Assembly: GCA_965112735.1 (NCBI GenBank)
Contig: OZ218951.1
Location: 1,612,001 to 1,676,000, forward strand
From: Phaeosaccion multiseriatum
Lineage: Eukaryota; Protista; Ochrophyta, other classes
Length of the DNA: 64,000 nucleotides
Direction of reading: 5' to 3'
In this document: positions 13,793 to 64,000 of the stretch, one piece after another
Layout: the number at the start of each line of letters is the position of its first letter
How positions within the stretch are numbered: the first letter of the stretch is position 1
Notes under the pieces: generated by a model
Databases searched by the model: none
The model's input: the letters and a program-made list of their open reading frames with translations, nothing else
What the model was told of the DNA's origin: nothing
Position numbers and translations under genes: made by a program

Positions 13793-14749
13793 TTTTTTTT
13801 TGCTTGTTTACGCTTTTCTCTTTGCTTGAAAGGCACCCTCTATCATGCCAAGAAGGCTCTCAATGCATTTTGTGAGACATTTCCTCCCCAGCACTCTCTC
13901 CTCTCCAGGCGTTTATTCATGCGCCGGTCGCACTTCTTTGTTTCTGTAACGCCACGCCATTTGAAGTGCCAGTTCGTCATTTTTTTGAGAGGCGGGGGGG
14001 GGGTGGATGGGACACTTTTGCTCGCGAAACAACCCCGCGGACCAGCCCACATCATGACCACCACGAGGAAACTGCTCTGTCTCAGGAGCTGCCCAGGAGG
14101 ACGAGAGAAAGCGCGTGAGCTGGGGTGATTTTGATTCCCCCCCCCCCACCCCCAGCTTAGGGAGGGTGATAGGTAGGCTGCGACCACAGCAGGCAGCGAC
14201 CACAGCACCTGACAACAGTGAGATCAGACACCATCATCACTAGCCAGACTCTGCAGGTACGGCCAACATACCCTGCTGAGGACAGAGAGGTCGTGGCCCC
14301 AAGTTAGCTTCTTTTTTTTTTTGAAGTATCTTAGGTTCTTGCCTGCTCCCTCCACTCCCTCTCTCCTTCTCTCTCTCCTTCTCTCTCTCTCTCTCTTCTC
14401 TTATCTTCTCTTATCTTCTCTTCTCTTCTCTCTTTCTTCCCTGTGTCCCTCCCTCCTTCGCTGCCTCCCGGCCCTCCCTCCCTCCCCTCCCTCCTGTATG
14501 TACTGTCAAATACGTCAAGAAAGCTCCGTGTCGGCCTTTTGTTTTGTCTAGCGGGGGATGGATCGAGCAGCGAGTGAGGGGCAGCCCTAGCCCTGGCTCG
14601 AGGAGATCCCTGAGCAATGGGGGTGGAGATGCAAGAGGGAGGAGGTGCAATGATTGTACTGTGAGGGGAGGAGAGGATGGTGGCGAGGAGGAGAAGGAGG
14701 GAGGACGGGGGGCTCTCAGCCGCTGGACTCCTCGGGAACGCAGCAGCAG

Positions 14750-15418
14750 CGCTTGCTGGACTCCAGAACCAGGCATCCCCACACTCTACCTTTCTGGCGG
14801 ACCCGACCAAGTCGTTACGTACTGCGAGGTCACCACTGCAGTACGTAACAACTTGGTCACGTCCGCCAGAAAGGTAGAGTGTGGGGATGCCTGGTTCTGG
14901 AGGTGTCCTCACACTCTACCTTTCTGGCGGACCCGACCAAGTCGTTACTTACTGCGAGGTCACCACTGCAGTACGTAACAACTTGGTCGGGTCCGCCAGA
15001 AAGGTAGAGTGTGGGGATGCCTGGTTCTGGAGGTGTCCTCACACTCTACCTTTCTAGCGGACCTGACCAAATCGTGTGTGGGGATGCCTGGTTCTGGAGG
15101 TGTCCTCACACACCACCCCAGTACGTAACGACTTGGTCGGGTCCGCCAGAAAGGTAGAGTGTGGGAATGCCTGGTTCTGGAGGTGTCCTCACACTCTACC
15201 TTTCTGGTGGACCTGATCAAGTCAGAACCAGGCATCCCCACACTCTACCTTTCTGGCGGACCCGACCAAGTCGTTACGTACTGCGAGGTCACCAATCGTC
15301 GCTCCTCTTGCTGCATGGACCGCATCACCGGCGTCAGCTTCAAGATCCTCGAACCGGACGGCACTACTGAGCTCTACTCCAGCACCTTCCCCTCATCCAC
15401 ACAAGACTCATACTTTCG
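14750..15418 (+). pseudogene. F-type lectin (fucolectin / F5-8 type C)-like exon fragment interrupted by a fold-back repeat array
   Basis: Removing the 459-nt insert gives ACWTPEPGIPTLYLSGGPDQVVTYCEVTNRRSSCCMDRITGVSFKILEPDGTTELYSSTF, which resembles the V-x-NR-x(1-3)-CC-x2-R motif; ends at donor CG|gtacgt; no clear start. Confidence 0.5.
14761..15294. repeat. Array of alternating direct and inverted copies of a 65-75-bp unit (nested hairpins; 130-bp higher-order period)
   Basis: Forward copies 14761-14835, 14910-14965, 15040-15075, 15190-15223, 15223-15294; inverted copies 14838-14902, 14968-15032, 15076-15099, 15120-15182. Confidence 0.95.
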
Positions 15419-17510
15419 GTACGTTGGGGAGGGGAGAGGGAGATTGGTATTTCATGCCTTTGGGTGCCGCCCTTCCTCTTCTCCTTCACTCTATTCAACC
15501 GTCAGTCCTGTTGTCGGACGTGAAGCAATGCTGCCCCTCGCCCCCCCCCACCTTCCCTTCGTCTAGACTGCGTGTGCCCCAGACTCAATCTCAGCCCTGT
15601 GCGCCTCCTGCTCTGTAATCGGCATGCCCATGGGACGCTCAATTCCAACTTCCCGGCAACTTGCTGCTCACTCCCCTTTGTGCTTCTTGTCTCCTTTGCC
15701 GCTCCTCGCCTTTTGCCCACCTCCTTCCCCTGGACCTACCATGACTTACAGTCTCCTCCGAGAAGGCGATCTGCGAGGCGGGCGGTGGAGCCTACGTCAT
15801 CTCCTCCAACGCGTGCACCTGCACTTCTGTGAACCCTCTCATTCCACCAGTGGGTGTGCGGTTGCGGCTTTCACCAGCGCTTCTCGCCAAGTACTTGACT
15901 CGCCCCAGAGCAGTTCCCGCGCTCTTTGCCACTACAGTCAGGAGGACTGCAGCATCAGCCCTTCCTCGAGAGTCCCTCAGCGATGGGGGTGGAGATGCAA
16001 GAAGAAGGAGGTGGAAGGCGGAGGAGGAGGAGGAGACGAGAGGAGAGAAGATGAAGAGGCCGTGGACGGGCACAGGAGGGAACCGCCAGACCCGATAAGG
16101 AGCTCTCCTTCAGTGGCAGTCGGGATAGCCACCAATTCAACGTTGTTGTTTCGTTTCGGCGCTTTCTTATTCGGTGTCTCCTCAGAGCCGCTCCACCCTG
16201 AAATAAATACCCTTTAAGCTCGTTGCATTTTGGGTGGAGTTCATTTTATGTTTCAGCAGAGGGTGGAGCGGCTTCAGTTATTTATGTCCAAATGGCAAAG
16301 TGCCATTAACGCTACTCCTGCTGCTCCTACTGCTCCAAACGTGTTATCATCAACAAGTGGTAGATCAACTTTAGCCGCCGCCATGGCCCAGAGTCTCCAC
16401 ATTGCGTCAGCCATAGATACTATGTCCGCCTCAAACACACCCCTCCATCAGGTCGAACCCCGTCCAGAACCGCCAGCAGTTCCTGGAGCGAGTCCTCAAC
16501 CTCTGCCCCAAAATGTACTCAGCCGCGCCAAGGGGTCCTCCGCCGAGAGGATGAGGGCAATGCATGAAGCCTCCGGCTCCTCAGCGATCCATGCTGCTCC
16601 TGCTGCTGCCCCCGCCCTTGATAGGCTCCTTCGTTCGCAGCACGCAGTAGTAGGTCAGGACACTCAGGACACTCCATCACGATTACCTCCTCTGTGATGC
16701 TGGTGCTGGTGCTGGTGCTACTCCTGGGGCGTTGCGGCTGCTTCTTGATGCTCCATCGGTTGCAGCGGGCAGTAGCACCTCCACAAAGCAGCTCAGGAAA
16801 CTCCATCATGGTTGGCTCCTCTATACTTCTGCTGCTGCTGTACTGGTGCTGCTCCTGCCGAGGCTCTACTGCCGCTTTTCATGCTCAATCGTTCTCCCCA
16901 GCAACTCAGGAAACTAGACGAGGGCGGATGGTGGCGGTGATGCTGCAGAGGCTCTGCAACTGCTTGTGATGACCCTTTGTTAGCACCAGCAGTGACACCT
17001 ACTACAGCAGGAGGTAGCTCGGAAAGTCCCACCCTAGGGGCGGCACCATATGCTCTGGTCTGCCTGCCCACGCAAAATGCCACACACGCGGGGAGAGGAG
17101 AGAGGAGAGGGGAGACGGGAGAGAGCAGAAGAGAGTGAGTGCCAGTCGGAGGAGGCAGCCAGGAGGGAAGACGTACAGCAAAGCAAGCAAGCAGGCCTCT
17201 CTTTACAGGAGTAGTTGTGGTTGCAAAAAAAAACAGCCCGCATCCACTAGCTGCCATCCCCACCCAGGCCTTAGTGTCTCTGCCGGTGTGCTCGCGACGC
17301 CCCTCTCTGTAATGCGCGGAGCAAAGCGCTGTGTAGGTGCATGGGGCCCGAGGGCAAGCCCATTTAGCAGGAAGCAAGCAAACAAAGCAAAAGCAAAGCA
17401 AAATAGTCAGCTGAAAAATAGTGATGCTTTCCCTGCGGGTTTTGGTACGACGGTTGGTGGTACGGCATGACGTAATTTCTCGAGGACCCCGCCGCTGGCT
17501 TTTTCGAAGC

Positions 17511-18491: not shown

Positions 18492-20643
18492 TCAGCTATG
18501 GTACCCACGCGTCTCGTCAGTCAGGTCCGCGCCGTGCGACGGCACGCCGTGAGTCATCTTGCAGACGTCCGACGCGAACCGCCCCTCACGCTCGTCAGCA
18601 ATATCTGCGCCGTGGACGAGGACCTTCTTGACTGAGGGAGGCGCGTGCTCAAGGTCGGCGACGGTGTCGATTCCCTCCTTGGCCGCCACCCACTCGTCGA
18701 TGTCATCGTCCTCGCCGTCAATGCACACAAGCTCCCATCCGGCAAAGAAGCGAGGCGCGAGGTAGATGCGCCCGGGGATGCACAGAAGGGTCATGAAGGG
18801 GAAGCCAATGGAGATAGCCTTGGTGTTCTGGACAATGAACACGCCGGCAAAGAAGACAAGCTGGAAGATGGTGTAGAGGTGGATCTGTCCGATGCGCATG
18901 TACTTGGTGTAGGGCGTCTCCTTGACCCTGCTGGTCTGCTGGAAGAACATTTGGATGCGCTTCCAAAACTGGATGTTGGGCAGAGAGCTGAGGCCCATGA
19001 AGAGGAACACGCCGTACAGCACGGGGAGGGGCAGGAGCTTGAGCAGACTCAGCGCCGCGAGGGATACTCCGACAAGCAGATGGGCCAAGAGGGCGCTCAA
19101 TCGCGTCTCCTGCACCCGGACGAAGTGGCCCTGCTCGTCCTTGTCGGCCAAGGCATTAAGATGCATGATGCAGGGTACCGTGGTGGCCACCAACCAGGGC
19201 AGGCCGAGCATCGCGTTGACGAAGTTGAAAATGCCGTTGAGCAGGAGGTCGTAGTTGTAGGCCTCTCCGTGCGCCAGCTTGTGGCTCTTGTGGTTGATAA
19301 GGTGCCATGTGATGCCATTGTCGAGGAAGCACAGCAGGAAGGCGAGGATGGCCGGGCCTGCCGCCATAATGGGCACCCAGTTCTTGCCATTCAGGTCTCC
19401 GAATCCGACGACCCAGTCGCGCGTACCTGCCGCCTCGGCCTGGCCCTCGCAATCATCAGGGAACATCATTTTGCAGTCGTCGTCGCAGCACTGGAAGCTG
19501 GGCTCGAAGTTCTCCGGCACGCTGAGCTTCTCCGTCTTGACGTCTGTGAACACGGCGGCGGCCACCACAGACCAGATCAGAACGGACACGGCCACGCTAA
19601 AGTCGTGGATGGAAGTGCGGATGCCGTCGCTGCTGAAGAAGGCGGAGTACTTGAAGCTCCGGAAGAAGAAGATCAGCCAGCATGTGCCAAGACCCAAAAT
19701 CGTGCTCAAGAGAGCGGTCGTCAGATAGGAGTACCTCTCGTTCCGGTCTTCGTGGGACTCGTGGCCAGGGGCGTAGTAGCGGAAGATACCCACGTCGGAC
19801 CAGGGGTCCCCGACGGCGTCCTTGACAAAGATGCTGACAATGAGCAGCGCAAAGATTTCGTCGGTGAAGCGGGTGGCCAGGCGGACGAAGCGAGTCATGT
19901 CCATGAACGAAGCGATACTAATGTAGATCAGCAGCCACACAGACACCCAGAGGTTGAAGGTCAGGAAGGGCACGCCTATGCTCTCGCTCATCTTGTAGAG
20001 CGCGCTCGAAACAGCAAGCACCGGACCGGTAGAGCCCATGATGCACACTGAAGAGAGCGCGAAGAGACGGGGGGGGGGGGTGGAGGAGAGCAGCAGCAGG
20101 AGTAGCAGCAGGTGGGTCAGAGAGTGTGGTGCGTGTGTGAGAGGAGTGCTTTTGCCGCGCTCCAGCCATTTGCGGCGAGAGGATCTCAAACCCCTCCCGC
20201 AGAATAAAAAACTCCGCCTCCACCCTGCCTCCACCCCGTCCCCCCGTGCGCTCTGCTATCCCCCACCCTCTCCCTGCCACGTACTCACTTGGCATGCCAC
20301 CGATCAGGGCGTAGACCACACCGACCCAGGCTGTGGCCAAGAGCGTCTCAACAGCGCCAATATTGTTCTCGGTGACCTTGCCGTACACCGCTCCGAAGGT
20401 CAGCGTGGGCGCAATGACCGTGATGAAGACCAGGATGGTGGTAGAGATGGTCTTCTGGTTAAAGTTGGTCATCTCCTTGACCCAGTGGGTCCCTACCGTC
20501 GTCTTGAACTCGCCCTTCACGCCCGTCCCCCACAGCTGGCCCTTCTCCAGGTGGATCTGGCCTGCGTTCGGGACAAGCAGCTCGTTGCCGGTCTCGTCAT
20601 GAGACTTGTCCACCTGCCTTTCCAAGCTCATTGGTGCCCTCAT
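18492..20643 (-). CDS. SLC4: SLC4-family (anion exchanger / HCO3- cotransporter) membrane protein; intron 20288-20048; start uncertain
   Basis: Motifs IAPTLTFG, GAVETLLATA, GGMP/MCIMGSTGPVL, TRFTDEIFALLI, AYNYDLL, LGLPWLVATTV, VQETRLS, LPLPVLYGVFLFMG. Confidence 0.93.
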
Positions 20644-61174: not shown

Positions 61175-61777
61175 TCTCCTCCTCCTCCTCCTCAATGTCG
61201 ACATTGCTGCGGGGGGGCGGGCGCTCTGCCTCATCGGGCGCGAATCGGTTTATCAGCTCCAGCATCCAGCCAGGGAGGGGCCTGTCGCGGAAGAGATTGC
61301 CATTCTCGCTGTGGAGGCCTTCGAGGCAGTGCACGGCACGCGGGACTCAGATCACCGTGTGGGTTGCCAGCAGTTGATGGCGGTCTCTGGGGCCGTAGAG
61401 TATGCCAGATCAGCGGGATACCAGGGGGATGAGCTGAAGAACCTTCTGCTGGACGCTGCAGTAACCGCTGGTTTCATGGTTTCATGGTTACTGCAGCGTC
61501 CAGCAGAAGGTTCTTCAGCTCATCCCCCTGGTATCCCGCTGATCTGGCATACTCTACGGCCCCAGAGACCGCCATCAACTGCTGGCAACCCACACGGTGA
61601 TCTGAGTCCCGCGTGCCGTGCACTGCCTCGAAGGCCTCCACAGCGAGAATGGCAATCTCTTCCGCGACAGGCCCCTCCCTGGCTGGATGCTGGAGCTGAT
61701 AAACCGATTCGCGCCCGATGAGGCAGAGCGCCCGCCCCCCCGCAGCAATGTCGACATGGAGGAGGAGGAGGAGGAGG
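61175..61777. repeat. Long inverted repeat, arms about 290 bp (61175-61466 / 61486-61777), 19-nt spacer
   Basis: Right arm is the reverse complement of the left with a single mismatch seen (caatgtcgac vs gtcgacatgg). Confidence 0.97.
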
Positions 61778-64000
61778 AGGAGAAGGAGCTCAAGGCGGAA
61801 ATGGCCATTCTGAAGGAGCTCGAGGCGCAGGTTGCTGCCAAGATCGACACTGACTACACGGAACCGGAGGAGCTGATTGACGGATTCAATGACCCCACCA
61901 GCTCACCGGAGGAGCGGGAAGAGAGCAAGGAGAAGAGCCAAGCCGCTTGTCAGGCCTGGTGCAAAGTTCTCCAGAGTGAGGTGCGGGCCAAGGGGGTGGA
62001 TCCACAGAAGAGCACGATGGGCTTCCTCTGGCACCAGCTGGACTTTACTGTATGCTTTCCGTGGCTCACGAGTAAACAGTTGGCGGACTTTACTTGGAAC
62101 GCCAACTGTTTACTCGTGAGCCACGGAAAGTATACAGTAAAGTCCAGCTGGTGCCAGAGGAAGCCCATCGTGCTCTTCTGTGGATTATGCGTGCGCCAGA
62201 AAACATGATTGATGGTGTTCGTGGCGACGACAGGCTCAAGGCCATCCAAACCGTGTTTGAGACCTCAGCCTTGTTCGTGGACCAGCAACTTCGCGGCAGG
62301 GGCAAGACGCTGGATGACCGCGCCACCTTCCATGCGCTTCTGGTGTGCGCTGCTCAGCGGCAGGACAGGAGGACTACGGAAACTCTCCTGCAGAATCTTC
62401 CCTTCTGGGATGCGGCACAGGTTCTGAGGCCGGAGGCGTTTCGCGGCCTTTCGCTGTTCAATGAGTTCTCAGTCGGGGGGGGGCTATGGCGAAAAGAGGA
62501 AGCCTGGTGGTTTCCGCAAGTCGCGTGGTGTAAATGTCAGTGAGCCCATCCGAGTGGAGTCGCTCCTGGTAAAGTATCCGGCGAGCTTTCGGGACGCGCT
62601 GGGTGCCCGGCTCCAAGGTCTGGGCCGAAAGCCCTACAGGAGTCTACAGGATGTGCGCGAGGCCGCCACAGGGGCTTGCCGCCTGGACGTCATCACCTAC
62701 GACGAGCTCCAGCACATAGAGTGGCTCTGCCGCAGAGTGGAGAGTCGCTTCGAGCAGATTTGTCTAGCCGGGGGTGACGAGGAGGAGGATTGGGGTGATG
62801 AGCCGGGCCGTGACGCCCAGCCTGGGGGAAGGGGACGCGAGACGGACTCTTACAAGAAGTATCGCATCTTTATGGAGATTCTTCACGACGTGAGTACTCG
62901 AGCGTGTGCGTTGCGTGTGTATGTGTTGGAGTGTGTGTAGCTGTGGCTGTTTGTGTGTGTGTGTACCATGTCCCTCCCGCTGTACAGCAGCTAACGAGCT
63001 GGACCCTACCCGTCTTCCTTCCCAAACTCCAGAACTTCTTGCTTCACCTGTCCAGAATCTACAAGCGGGCCACTTCTCTGAGCAGCTCGTTTCTGCTGTC
63101 GATGGTGCTCGAGGCCAGAGTAGGCAAGGTGTTCCCAGCAGCGGACCCTCGCCGCGCATCGCCCCTTCACTTGGGCAGCACAAGGGAACTCCGCCGCGAG
63201 CTCCTCTCCCTCATGAGCCTTCTCGGTTCAGACGGCTGCATCAGACCCCACCAGGCTGAGCTGGGATTGAAGGCGCGAAAGAGCGAGCGTAGGGTCATGC
63301 GCATCATGCGAGACGTTCTCCGTATCGTCGGAGGCAAGAAGGGCGGCACAATTTACAGGCGCTACAGCGGCACCAGCATACACGGCAAAGCGCTCTTCTG
63401 CTACGTCGTCTACCTACGCCACCCCCACGTGAGTACATGGCTGGCCCGCTCGCCGCTGCCCTCGCCCCTCCCCCCCCCCCTCATGCCGCTCTCCCTCTCC
63501 ACCCACCCACTGTGCAGCTGTGGGCCATCCTCGGCATCCTCGCTGGCAACGGTTCCAGCAAGGTCTCCGACCGGTTCAGTCACGCCCGGAGGATGCTCTT
63601 CTGCTACACCATGTCCGACGCCCCGACTCTCAAGGATGAGGAGGCAGCGCAAACGGACTTTGCCAAATCCGCCGTTACTTTCTTCTCCGGCATGATCGAT
63701 GGTATGTGGTAGAACAACACAACCAGGGAAAGACACCAAGCGCTTGGCTCCTCCGGTCGATAATAAACTCGCTGACAGCCTTGCTCCTCCTCGCCCCCCC
63801 CCCCACCACCAATGTCTGTGTGCGTGAACCACAGGAGACGGTCACAACGGCAGTCTCAAGAAGCGCAAGCGCAAGGGCAAGAAGGGCAAGAAGGGCAAGG
63901 GCAAGAGCAAGGGCAAGGGCAAGCGCGGGAGGAGGCAGATTGGTCGACGGCGGGCCATTCTGGCGCTCTTCTCCACCAATCGGGGTGAGCTCGACTTCTG
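61377..64000 (+). CDS. Intron-containing gene (disrupted as assembled; 3' end outside the window) encoding a helical N-terminal region and a double-motif LAGLIDADG endonuclease-like domain
   Basis: Introns 62890-62987, 63429-63517 and 63702-63834 are phase-consistent; product contains LMSLLGSDGCI and FFSGMIDG|DGH followed by AILALFSTNRGELDF; frame broken by two inverted insertions and a G9 run; start uncertain. Confidence 0.7.
62000..62185. repeat. Inverted repeat, 86-bp arms (62000-62085 / 62100-62185), 14-nt loop
   Basis: Perfect complementarity except G62054/T62131. Confidence 0.97.

Follow-up and report, generated by a model that had tools for sequence, protein, structure and literature searches.

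Organization of the array

The window analysed here is a 64,000-nucleotide stretch of contig OZ218951.1 from the ochrophyte Phaeosaccion multiseriatum, and coordinates below are those of the window unless another contig or locus is named. At positions 14761-15294 it carries an array of 534 bases in which one short piece of 55-72 nt is copied back and forth, and the last copy runs on into lectin-like exon and intron sequence (Table 1). The array consists of 10 segments, 6 forward (F) and 4 inverted (R), which alternate apart from the F10|F11 junction; two of them are small (R6, 24 nt, and F7, 14 nt). Only two kinds of turn occur, a 12-nt loop and an 8-nt loop, and the 8-nt-loop junction of 14893-14900 recurs at 15023-15030, 15090-15097 and 15173-15180. 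The first hairpin has 65-nt arms of 95% complementarity around its 12-nt loop, and a period of 130 bp was found both by a repeat search and by TRF (2.3 copies, 95% matches); each 130-nt unit is composed of 55 nt forward, 12 nt of loop, 55 nt inverted and 8 nt of loop. F1 and F11 show 0 differences over 72 nt, and the offset between them, 459 nt or 3 x 153, is the net insert. An initial annotation of this DNA, made from the letters of the sequence, had described nine alternating copies. The alternation lies where it was placed, but the number of segments is the one given here; the 65-bp arms and 12-nt loop of the first hairpin, the repeated 130-bp unit, the 459-nt net insert and the match of the first to the last copy were all recovered as that annotation had them.

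A local template at first-copy positions 14761-14837 accounts for every segment of the array except ~9 nt, which are the ct of the 12-nt loop and the 7 nt at 15112-15118, and neighbouring segments overlap at their junctions by 1-3 nt. The array has the marks of a fold-back scar in two respects: inverted copies lie beside their own template (arms of 55-65 nt, loops of 12 and 8 nt), and the templating is local with short microhomology at the switch points. In the third unit the 12-nt-loop tip has, in effect, been replaced by a copy of the 8-nt-loop hairpin tip, a rearrangement such as hairpin arms may be expected to undergo. Read in the frame of the exon, the array meets a stop codon at 14976-14978.

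Table 1 Features of the array, its host fragment and the flanks, in window coordinates.
Feature	Position	Strand	Description
Left copy of ~140-bp direct (bracket) repeat	14568-14710	+	Local alignment partner 15935-16071
Left junction	14722-14764	+	10-nt direct repeat GCTGGACTCC at 14722-14731 and 14755-14764
F1	14764-14835	+	First forward copy; 100% identical to F11; paralogue homology starts at 14764
12-nt loop	14826-14837	+	First type of turn (forward to inverted); exon continuation gaggtcacca plus ct; junction recurs at 14956-14967
R2	14838-14902	-	Inverted copy; G, T, T at first-copy positions 14803, 14804, 14813
8-nt loop	14893-14900	+	Second type of turn (inverted to forward); 2-nt overlap (ag) at the switch
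Second 130-bp unit	14901-15032		F3 and R4; 95% identical to first unit
F3	14901-14966	+	Forward copy, part of second 130-bp unit
R4	14968-15032	-	Inverted copy, part of second 130-bp unit
Rearranged third unit	15031-15182		F5, R6, F7, 7 nt of altered loop, R9
F5	15031-15075	+	Forward copy, third unit
R6	15076-15099	-	Inverted, 24 nt, third unit
F7	15098-15111	+	Forward, 14 nt, third unit
Altered loop sequence	15112-15118		7 nt, between F7 and R9
R9	15119-15182	-	Inverted copy, third unit
F10	15181-15223	+	Shortened forward copy; head-to-tail with F11, 1-nt overlap
F11	15223-15294	+	Last forward copy; runs on into remaining exon-like sequence
F11 and rest of exon fragment	15223-15418	+	C-terminal ~65 codons of lectin-like domain; frame open; ends in GTACGT donor-like site
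Intron-derived part of fragment	15419-15941	+	~520 nt; paralogue homology 78-84%
Right copy of ~140-bp direct (bracket) repeat	15935-16071	+	Partner 14568-14710

The lectin-like host fragment

A search for lectin paralogues of the unit, proposed in the initial annotation, was productive: the encoded peptide has ~20 further copies in the genome, all exon cassettes, frequently in pairs or triplets ~920 bp apart, on contigs C3, C5, C7, C8, C10 and C14. Each paralogue consists of one exon of ~140 codons with a conserved intron downstream. The best PDB match to a profile of the paralogue domains is the eel fucose-binding agglutinin 1k12, a weak match (E = 0.35) whose alignment covers the NR-D-CC--R stretch (Asn-Arg-x-Asp-Cys-Cys-x-x-Arg); the Pfam family F5_F8_type_C_2 gives sub-cut-off scores in 7 of 13 copies, and the Atlas neighbours of the domain are F5/8 type C clusters. 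From the F-type lectin sugar-binding signature, His...Arg-x-Asp-Cys-Cys-x-x-Arg, the fragment in the window keeps the NRRSSCC-DR part and is without the part that bears the His. On these similarities the domain may reasonably be called lectin-like, or F-type-lectin-like.

Tandem lectin-like exons ~920 bp apart are seen at locus L024 (C10:3242300-3246900), at L004/L010 (C5:~500000) and at L007/L008 (C5:~1161000), and the introns of the tandem loci are as similar between copies as the exons. One of these lectin-like loci carries a C-type lectin exon on its minus strand (L008:2708-3160; Pfam Lectin_C, E = 3e-8).

With the array taken out, the host is a 719-bp piece that runs from mid-exon to mid-intron. 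At its left boundary, DNA homology to every paralogue sets in at 14764, and F11 behaves like F1 in this; farther upstream the paralogues still clearly resemble one another, whereas the window's flank there is not like them, and local alignment of the flank upstream of 14764 found no homology to the paralogues above shuffled controls. An upstream likeness to the paralogues at 14738-14749 was considered and dropped, its local alignment score being equal to the mean of the shuffled controls. At the right boundary, homology ends at 15941, in mid-intron, and the paralogues stay alike past this point. A tblastn search with full paralogue domains matched the C-terminal half only, the N-terminal half of the domain being absent from the 64-kb window, and both the splice acceptor and the half-domain with the conserved His are missing from the fragment. 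The array had initially been placed inside a lectin-like exon; its host is instead a truncated fragment, with homology limited to 14764-15941.

The exon part of the fragment is about 83-86% identical to the paralogues and the intron part 82-84%, the exon being no better conserved. Six residues of the fragment differ within a 27-residue block that hardly varies among the paralogues compared. Over 48 codons, dN/dS is 0.6-0.85 for the fragment and 0.6-1.8 among the paralogues themselves, and is uninformative. Because half of the domain and the acceptor are missing and six near-invariant residues are changed, the host reads as dead; we infer that it is a dispersed lectin-domain fragment whose truncated 5' end is capped by the array.

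The end of homology coincides with the ends of the copies. Every inverted copy ends at first-copy positions 14761-14763, and after the head-to-tail F10|F11 junction the sequence restarts at 14764, which is also where homology to the paralogues starts, so that three boundaries fall within 4 nt. This is what run-off would predict if the template ended there during copying. Such a match of boundaries would be unlikely had the array arisen at a random place inside the 719-bp fragment.

Flanks and junctions

The fragment is bracketed by the two copies of a ~140-bp direct repeat, which are ~80-83% alike (83% over the core, 14581-14650 versus 15949-16016). Apart from low-complexity matches, no further copies of this repeat or of the flanks were found in the genome. 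A mobile element was considered as the source of the locus and ruled out, the array being derived wholly from the local exon piece and the flanks and bracket repeat being otherwise confined to this single locus. The bracket repeat could represent a target duplication that accompanied capture of the fragment, though its copies are far more diverged than those of the array. Taken as a date for the insertion, the bracket repeats would make the array the younger of the two, unless exchange has kept its copies uniform.

At the left junction the last base of the second GCTGGACTCC copy (14764) is the first base of the lectin-derived fragment; by calculation, ~0.004 direct repeats of 10 nt are expected within 100 nt. 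The 53 nt between the left bracket repeat and the fragment (14711-14763) have no partner to the right of the fragment and no detectable relative. A fold-back was looked for at the right end of the fragment (15941), and none was found there. A duplicated target, foreign filler DNA and small repeats together at one junction are the look of error-prone break repair. The flank architecture of the lectin fragment has that look, resembling in our analysis what is described for such repair (PMC4912351, PMC5068794).

Two kinds of simple sequence lie nearby: a CT-rich simple repeat at 14346-14494, with >100 similar stretches across the genome, and purine-rich GGAGGA tracts at 14650-14715 and 16016-16060, which adjoin the bracket repeats.

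Variation among the copies

Twelve sites vary among the copies, 10 by transitions and 2 by transversions, and the inner copies differ from F1 at ~3-6% of positions. The initial annotation had reported that the differences were mostly transitions, several of them at CpG, and had taken the array for a real and aged structure rather than a library chimera. The predominance of transitions is borne out, and the three examples that it quoted are all present; CpG sites do account for 4 of the 12 variants, but against ~14% expected the enrichment is weak. The age and reality of the array agree with the way in which variants are common to several copies, in a nested or mosaic pattern. The CpG observed/expected ratio of the window is 0.64 and the genome has one DNA-methyltransferase-like match; methylation of the array is possible, if weakly supported.

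Three changes beside the 8-nt loop (first-copy positions 14774, 14775 and 14779) are common to all inner forward copies, one variant is common to R2 and R4, and another to F5 and F10. At sites 14779 and 14804 all four allele combinations are present among the copies, which therefore points to exchange between copies or to recurrent change. At these same two sites the base of the identical outer copies is absent or rare in the 18 paralogues compared, and the paralogue base is carried by some of the inner copies; the outer copies are therefore not simply pristine, and their identity may come from recent exchange. With copies all of one age, F1 and F11 would show no difference in 72 nt with a probability of ~0.01-0.1; their identity beside diverged inner copies calls for recent exchange between these two, or else for error-prone synthesis of the copies between them. 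Duplication of the 130-bp unit with exchange accounts for the sharing of variants better than a single snap-back cascade, with which the sharing does not agree because F3 would have inherited the three variants of R2 and is without them.

Origin of the array

The observed anatomy, truncation, boundary coincidence and mosaic of variants are, in our judgement, probably best read together as the outcome of fold-back copying with template switching at a broken or captured DNA end, followed by unit duplication, rearrangement, point changes and exchange. The left end of the lectin piece would once have been a DNA end or the end of a template. There a polymerase would have run out of template, turned back by means of a 2-3-nt match and gone on to copy the other strand, and a second turn at another short match would then have produced the forward-inverted-forward order with its 12-nt and 8-nt loops. 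The 130-bp unit, made of one forward and one inverted copy, would later have been duplicated by slippage or unequal exchange, one unit would have been rearranged across hairpin tips, and point changes would have accumulated while short tracts were exchanged between copies and possibly also with paralogues. The order of these events is a reconstruction, as are the enzymes that may have been involved and the presumed lack of function of the array. From the sequence, the array is most likely a structural scar, neither a working exon nor a mobile element, and we file it as an unusually elaborate example of an already known type of rearrangement scar.

The initial annotation had proposed multi-round snap-back synthesis. 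The two kinds of turn are most naturally accounted for by fold-back, and that part of the proposal is retained; a single cascade is not, given F3. The related idea of one burst of rolling hairpin synthesis, in which the copies would all be of the same age and their differences would be polymerase errors, is attractive in that there are just two alternating kinds of turn, the copies all end at a common template end, F1 equals F11, and the three changes clustered beside the 8-nt loop look like error-prone synthesis right after a switch. We nevertheless consider it unlikely, since an F3 templated on its neighbour should hold the three variants of R2 and holds none, R4 has a variant in common with R2 though its template would be F1, the 12 sites in 386 inner positions (3%) far exceed the error rates of repair polymerases, and several of the variants are the paralogue state, which random errors would rarely produce. 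Short palindromic repeats are hard to polish, and an assembly or library artefact, such that the array is nonexistent or has fewer copies in the organism, has to be weighed for that reason; it is improbable with loops made of local exon sequence rather than an adapter-like insert, arms of 55-65 nt that are far below read length, unique sequence on both sides, and a structured sharing of variants, some of them paralogue states, that is not expected from consensus errors.

The array also invites reading as a newly gained intron. An AG|GT lies at 14827-14830 within the 72-nt duplicated piece, and the direct duplication (72 nt identical, offset 459 nt) is of the form required by the AGGT tandem-duplication route, in which excision of 14829-15287 would join the copies seamlessly and leave a working exon. 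The initial annotation had stated that this splicing restores the exon. Its arithmetic is exact, 459 being a multiple of 3, and the AG|GT is where it should be, but there is no complete exon to restore: homology starts mid-exon at 14764, the window does not contain the N-terminal half of the domain, and the fragment has no acceptor. The would-be donor is GTCACC and the would-be acceptor lacks a pyrimidine tract, as the same annotation recognised in calling the sites weak, while the fragment's own donor-like site is GTACGT. The exon pieces were searched separately (window 14544-14975 and 15222-15419). On this balance a gained intron is very improbable indeed.

Among known rearrangements, inverted triplications (DUP-TRP/INV-DUP) and fold-back inversions arise from fork stalling or break-induced replication. 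The array is like DUP-TRP/INV-DUP in its forward-inverted-forward order and its two switch points with microhomology, but the latter extend over kilobases to megabases, whereas each unit here measures 130 bp and was then amplified in tandem. Snap-back insertions made by polymerase theta are usually tens of nucleotides long; the arms here are 55-65 nt, and the enzyme is not assignable from sequence. Polymerase theta extends ends by snap-back templated synthesis (PMC4912351), and the likeness of its end joining to the array lies in a 3' end that folds back to pair with its own strand over 2-3 nt and is extended there through several rounds, in short flank repeats at the junction, with which the 10-nt GCTGGACTCC may be compared, and in the capture of foreign filler (PMC4912351, PMC5068794).

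Complete hairpins can also arise in one template-switching event (PMC10710096), and the arms of imperfect inverted repeats can be homogenised and expanded when switching takes place between them (PMC13100816). Such hairpins resemble the array in having an inverted copy beside its template, short loops and stems that are perfect at birth, with later switching between arms that spreads or erases differences (PMC10710096, PMC13100816). The cases described in those accounts are single short hairpins of about miRNA size, whereas the array has arms of 55-65 nt, at least 4 pairs of turns, and copies that end at the truncation of a gene fragment.

Under the favoured reading of fold-back copying and later unit duplication, the locus would be a clean natural case in which the end of a captured gene fragment was copied by serial fold-back, and its sequence directly displays the two switch points, the subsequent duplications of units and the exchange among copies. 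The array alone changes no current view.

RNA folding and the small-RNA reading

RNA folding had been proposed as a check in the initial annotation, and the predicted fold of the region is extreme: -430.6 kcal/mol against -208.7 +/- 7.7 for 100 shuffles (z = -28.7), with predicted stems of 55-130 bp. The array copies are 85-92% identical to the paralogous exons, so that the hairpin arms are homologous to a candidate target family, and the genome encodes a Piwi/Argonaute gene and genes with RNase III domains. R2 has a 37-nt exact antisense match on the + strand to exons at C7:1527963 and C14:747416, and matches of 29 nt to four more. The 37-nt match depends on three variants at 14803, 14804 and 14813 that occur together only in R2, and none of the other array copies has a word of at least 20 nt in common with any paralogue examined. 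The paralogue-like tract of R2 is explained equally well if ancestral bases were retained in it or if a paralogue donated a short conversion tract; selection for antisense pairing would be a non-neutral explanation of the same bases and is a minority possibility. All 13 of 13 Rfam matches, which are miRNA look-alikes, fall below the gathering scores (best 43.3 bits versus 73).

The initial annotation had inferred siRNA/miRNA precursors directed against a lectin family. The locus could on this evidence be a functional hairpin-RNA locus, transcribed and diced into small RNAs that silence the lectin family, and with Argonaute/Piwi and RNase III genes in the genome such a role is conceivable. The predicted fold, these genes and the perfect 37-nt antisense match of R2 to two paralogous exons all speak for it. 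We judge it quite unlikely all the same, because around the array there is no recognisable gene or promoter, the antisense match is a property of R2 among the copies and has equally good neutral explanations, sub-threshold Rfam matches are what any hairpin gives, and two further fold-back structures in the window make it seem that such hairpins arise as by-products.

Fly (Drosophila) hpRNA loci are hairpin-RNA genes born by inverted duplication of their targets, and the array is like them in having arms homologous to a multigene family, tandem hairpin units and one arm that is exactly antisense to members of the family. MIR and hpRNA genes are defined by transcription, dicing and target repression, whereas the resemblance of the array is one of sequence and predicted fold. 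The likenesses just named extend to MIR genes such as those of plants, of which young members have an established origin in the inverted duplication of target genes (PMC3237417), a precedent that also favours the small-RNA reading. Carried further, the array would be a young, evolving hairpin-RNA gene that originated in a captured piece of lectin exon, in which R2 is kept perfectly antisense over 37 nt to two members of the family and small RNAs tune a set of rapidly diversifying secreted lectins, which we regard as a long shot; if true, new silencing genes would have their raw material in the frequent fold-back scars of the genome. New small-RNA genes are known to start from hairpins of this kind, and the locus is a cheap candidate in that respect.

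Other fold-backs and genes in the window

Two more palindromes lie near the end of the window. The one at 61176-61776 has 291-nt arms that are 100% complementary and a 19-nt loop with a tandem ggtttcat; the other, at 62000-62185, lies ~220 nt downstream in the same open frame and has 86-nt arms, 99% complementary, around a 14-nt loop. Together with the array, these two fold-backs suggest that breaks in the DNA of this alga are often repaired with back-and-forth copies of sequence that lay nearby or was captured, which, if true, would offer a useful way into the repair pathways of an understudied group. The right arm of the larger palindrome enters an open frame whose initial ATG lies near 61757, and pieces of its arms have 94-96% relatives on contigs C12 and C7. 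The left arm of the smaller one covers an exon-like end and a GTATGC donor-like site, so that its inverted copy would be intronic.

Around the array itself, the open frame that runs into it had no match in a large protein collection, from which this genome is apparently absent, and among ORFs of at least 130 aa within ~8 kb of the array no Pfam match was found except in a transporter gene. This gene, for a bicarbonate transporter, is the nearest one identified and lies on the opposite strand at a distance of 3 kb. It is of SLC4 type and has a long exon at 18495-20234 on the minus strand (Pfam HCO3_cotransp, E = 1e-99), which is most similar, at 68% identity, to proteins of diatoms and one of Prymnesium.
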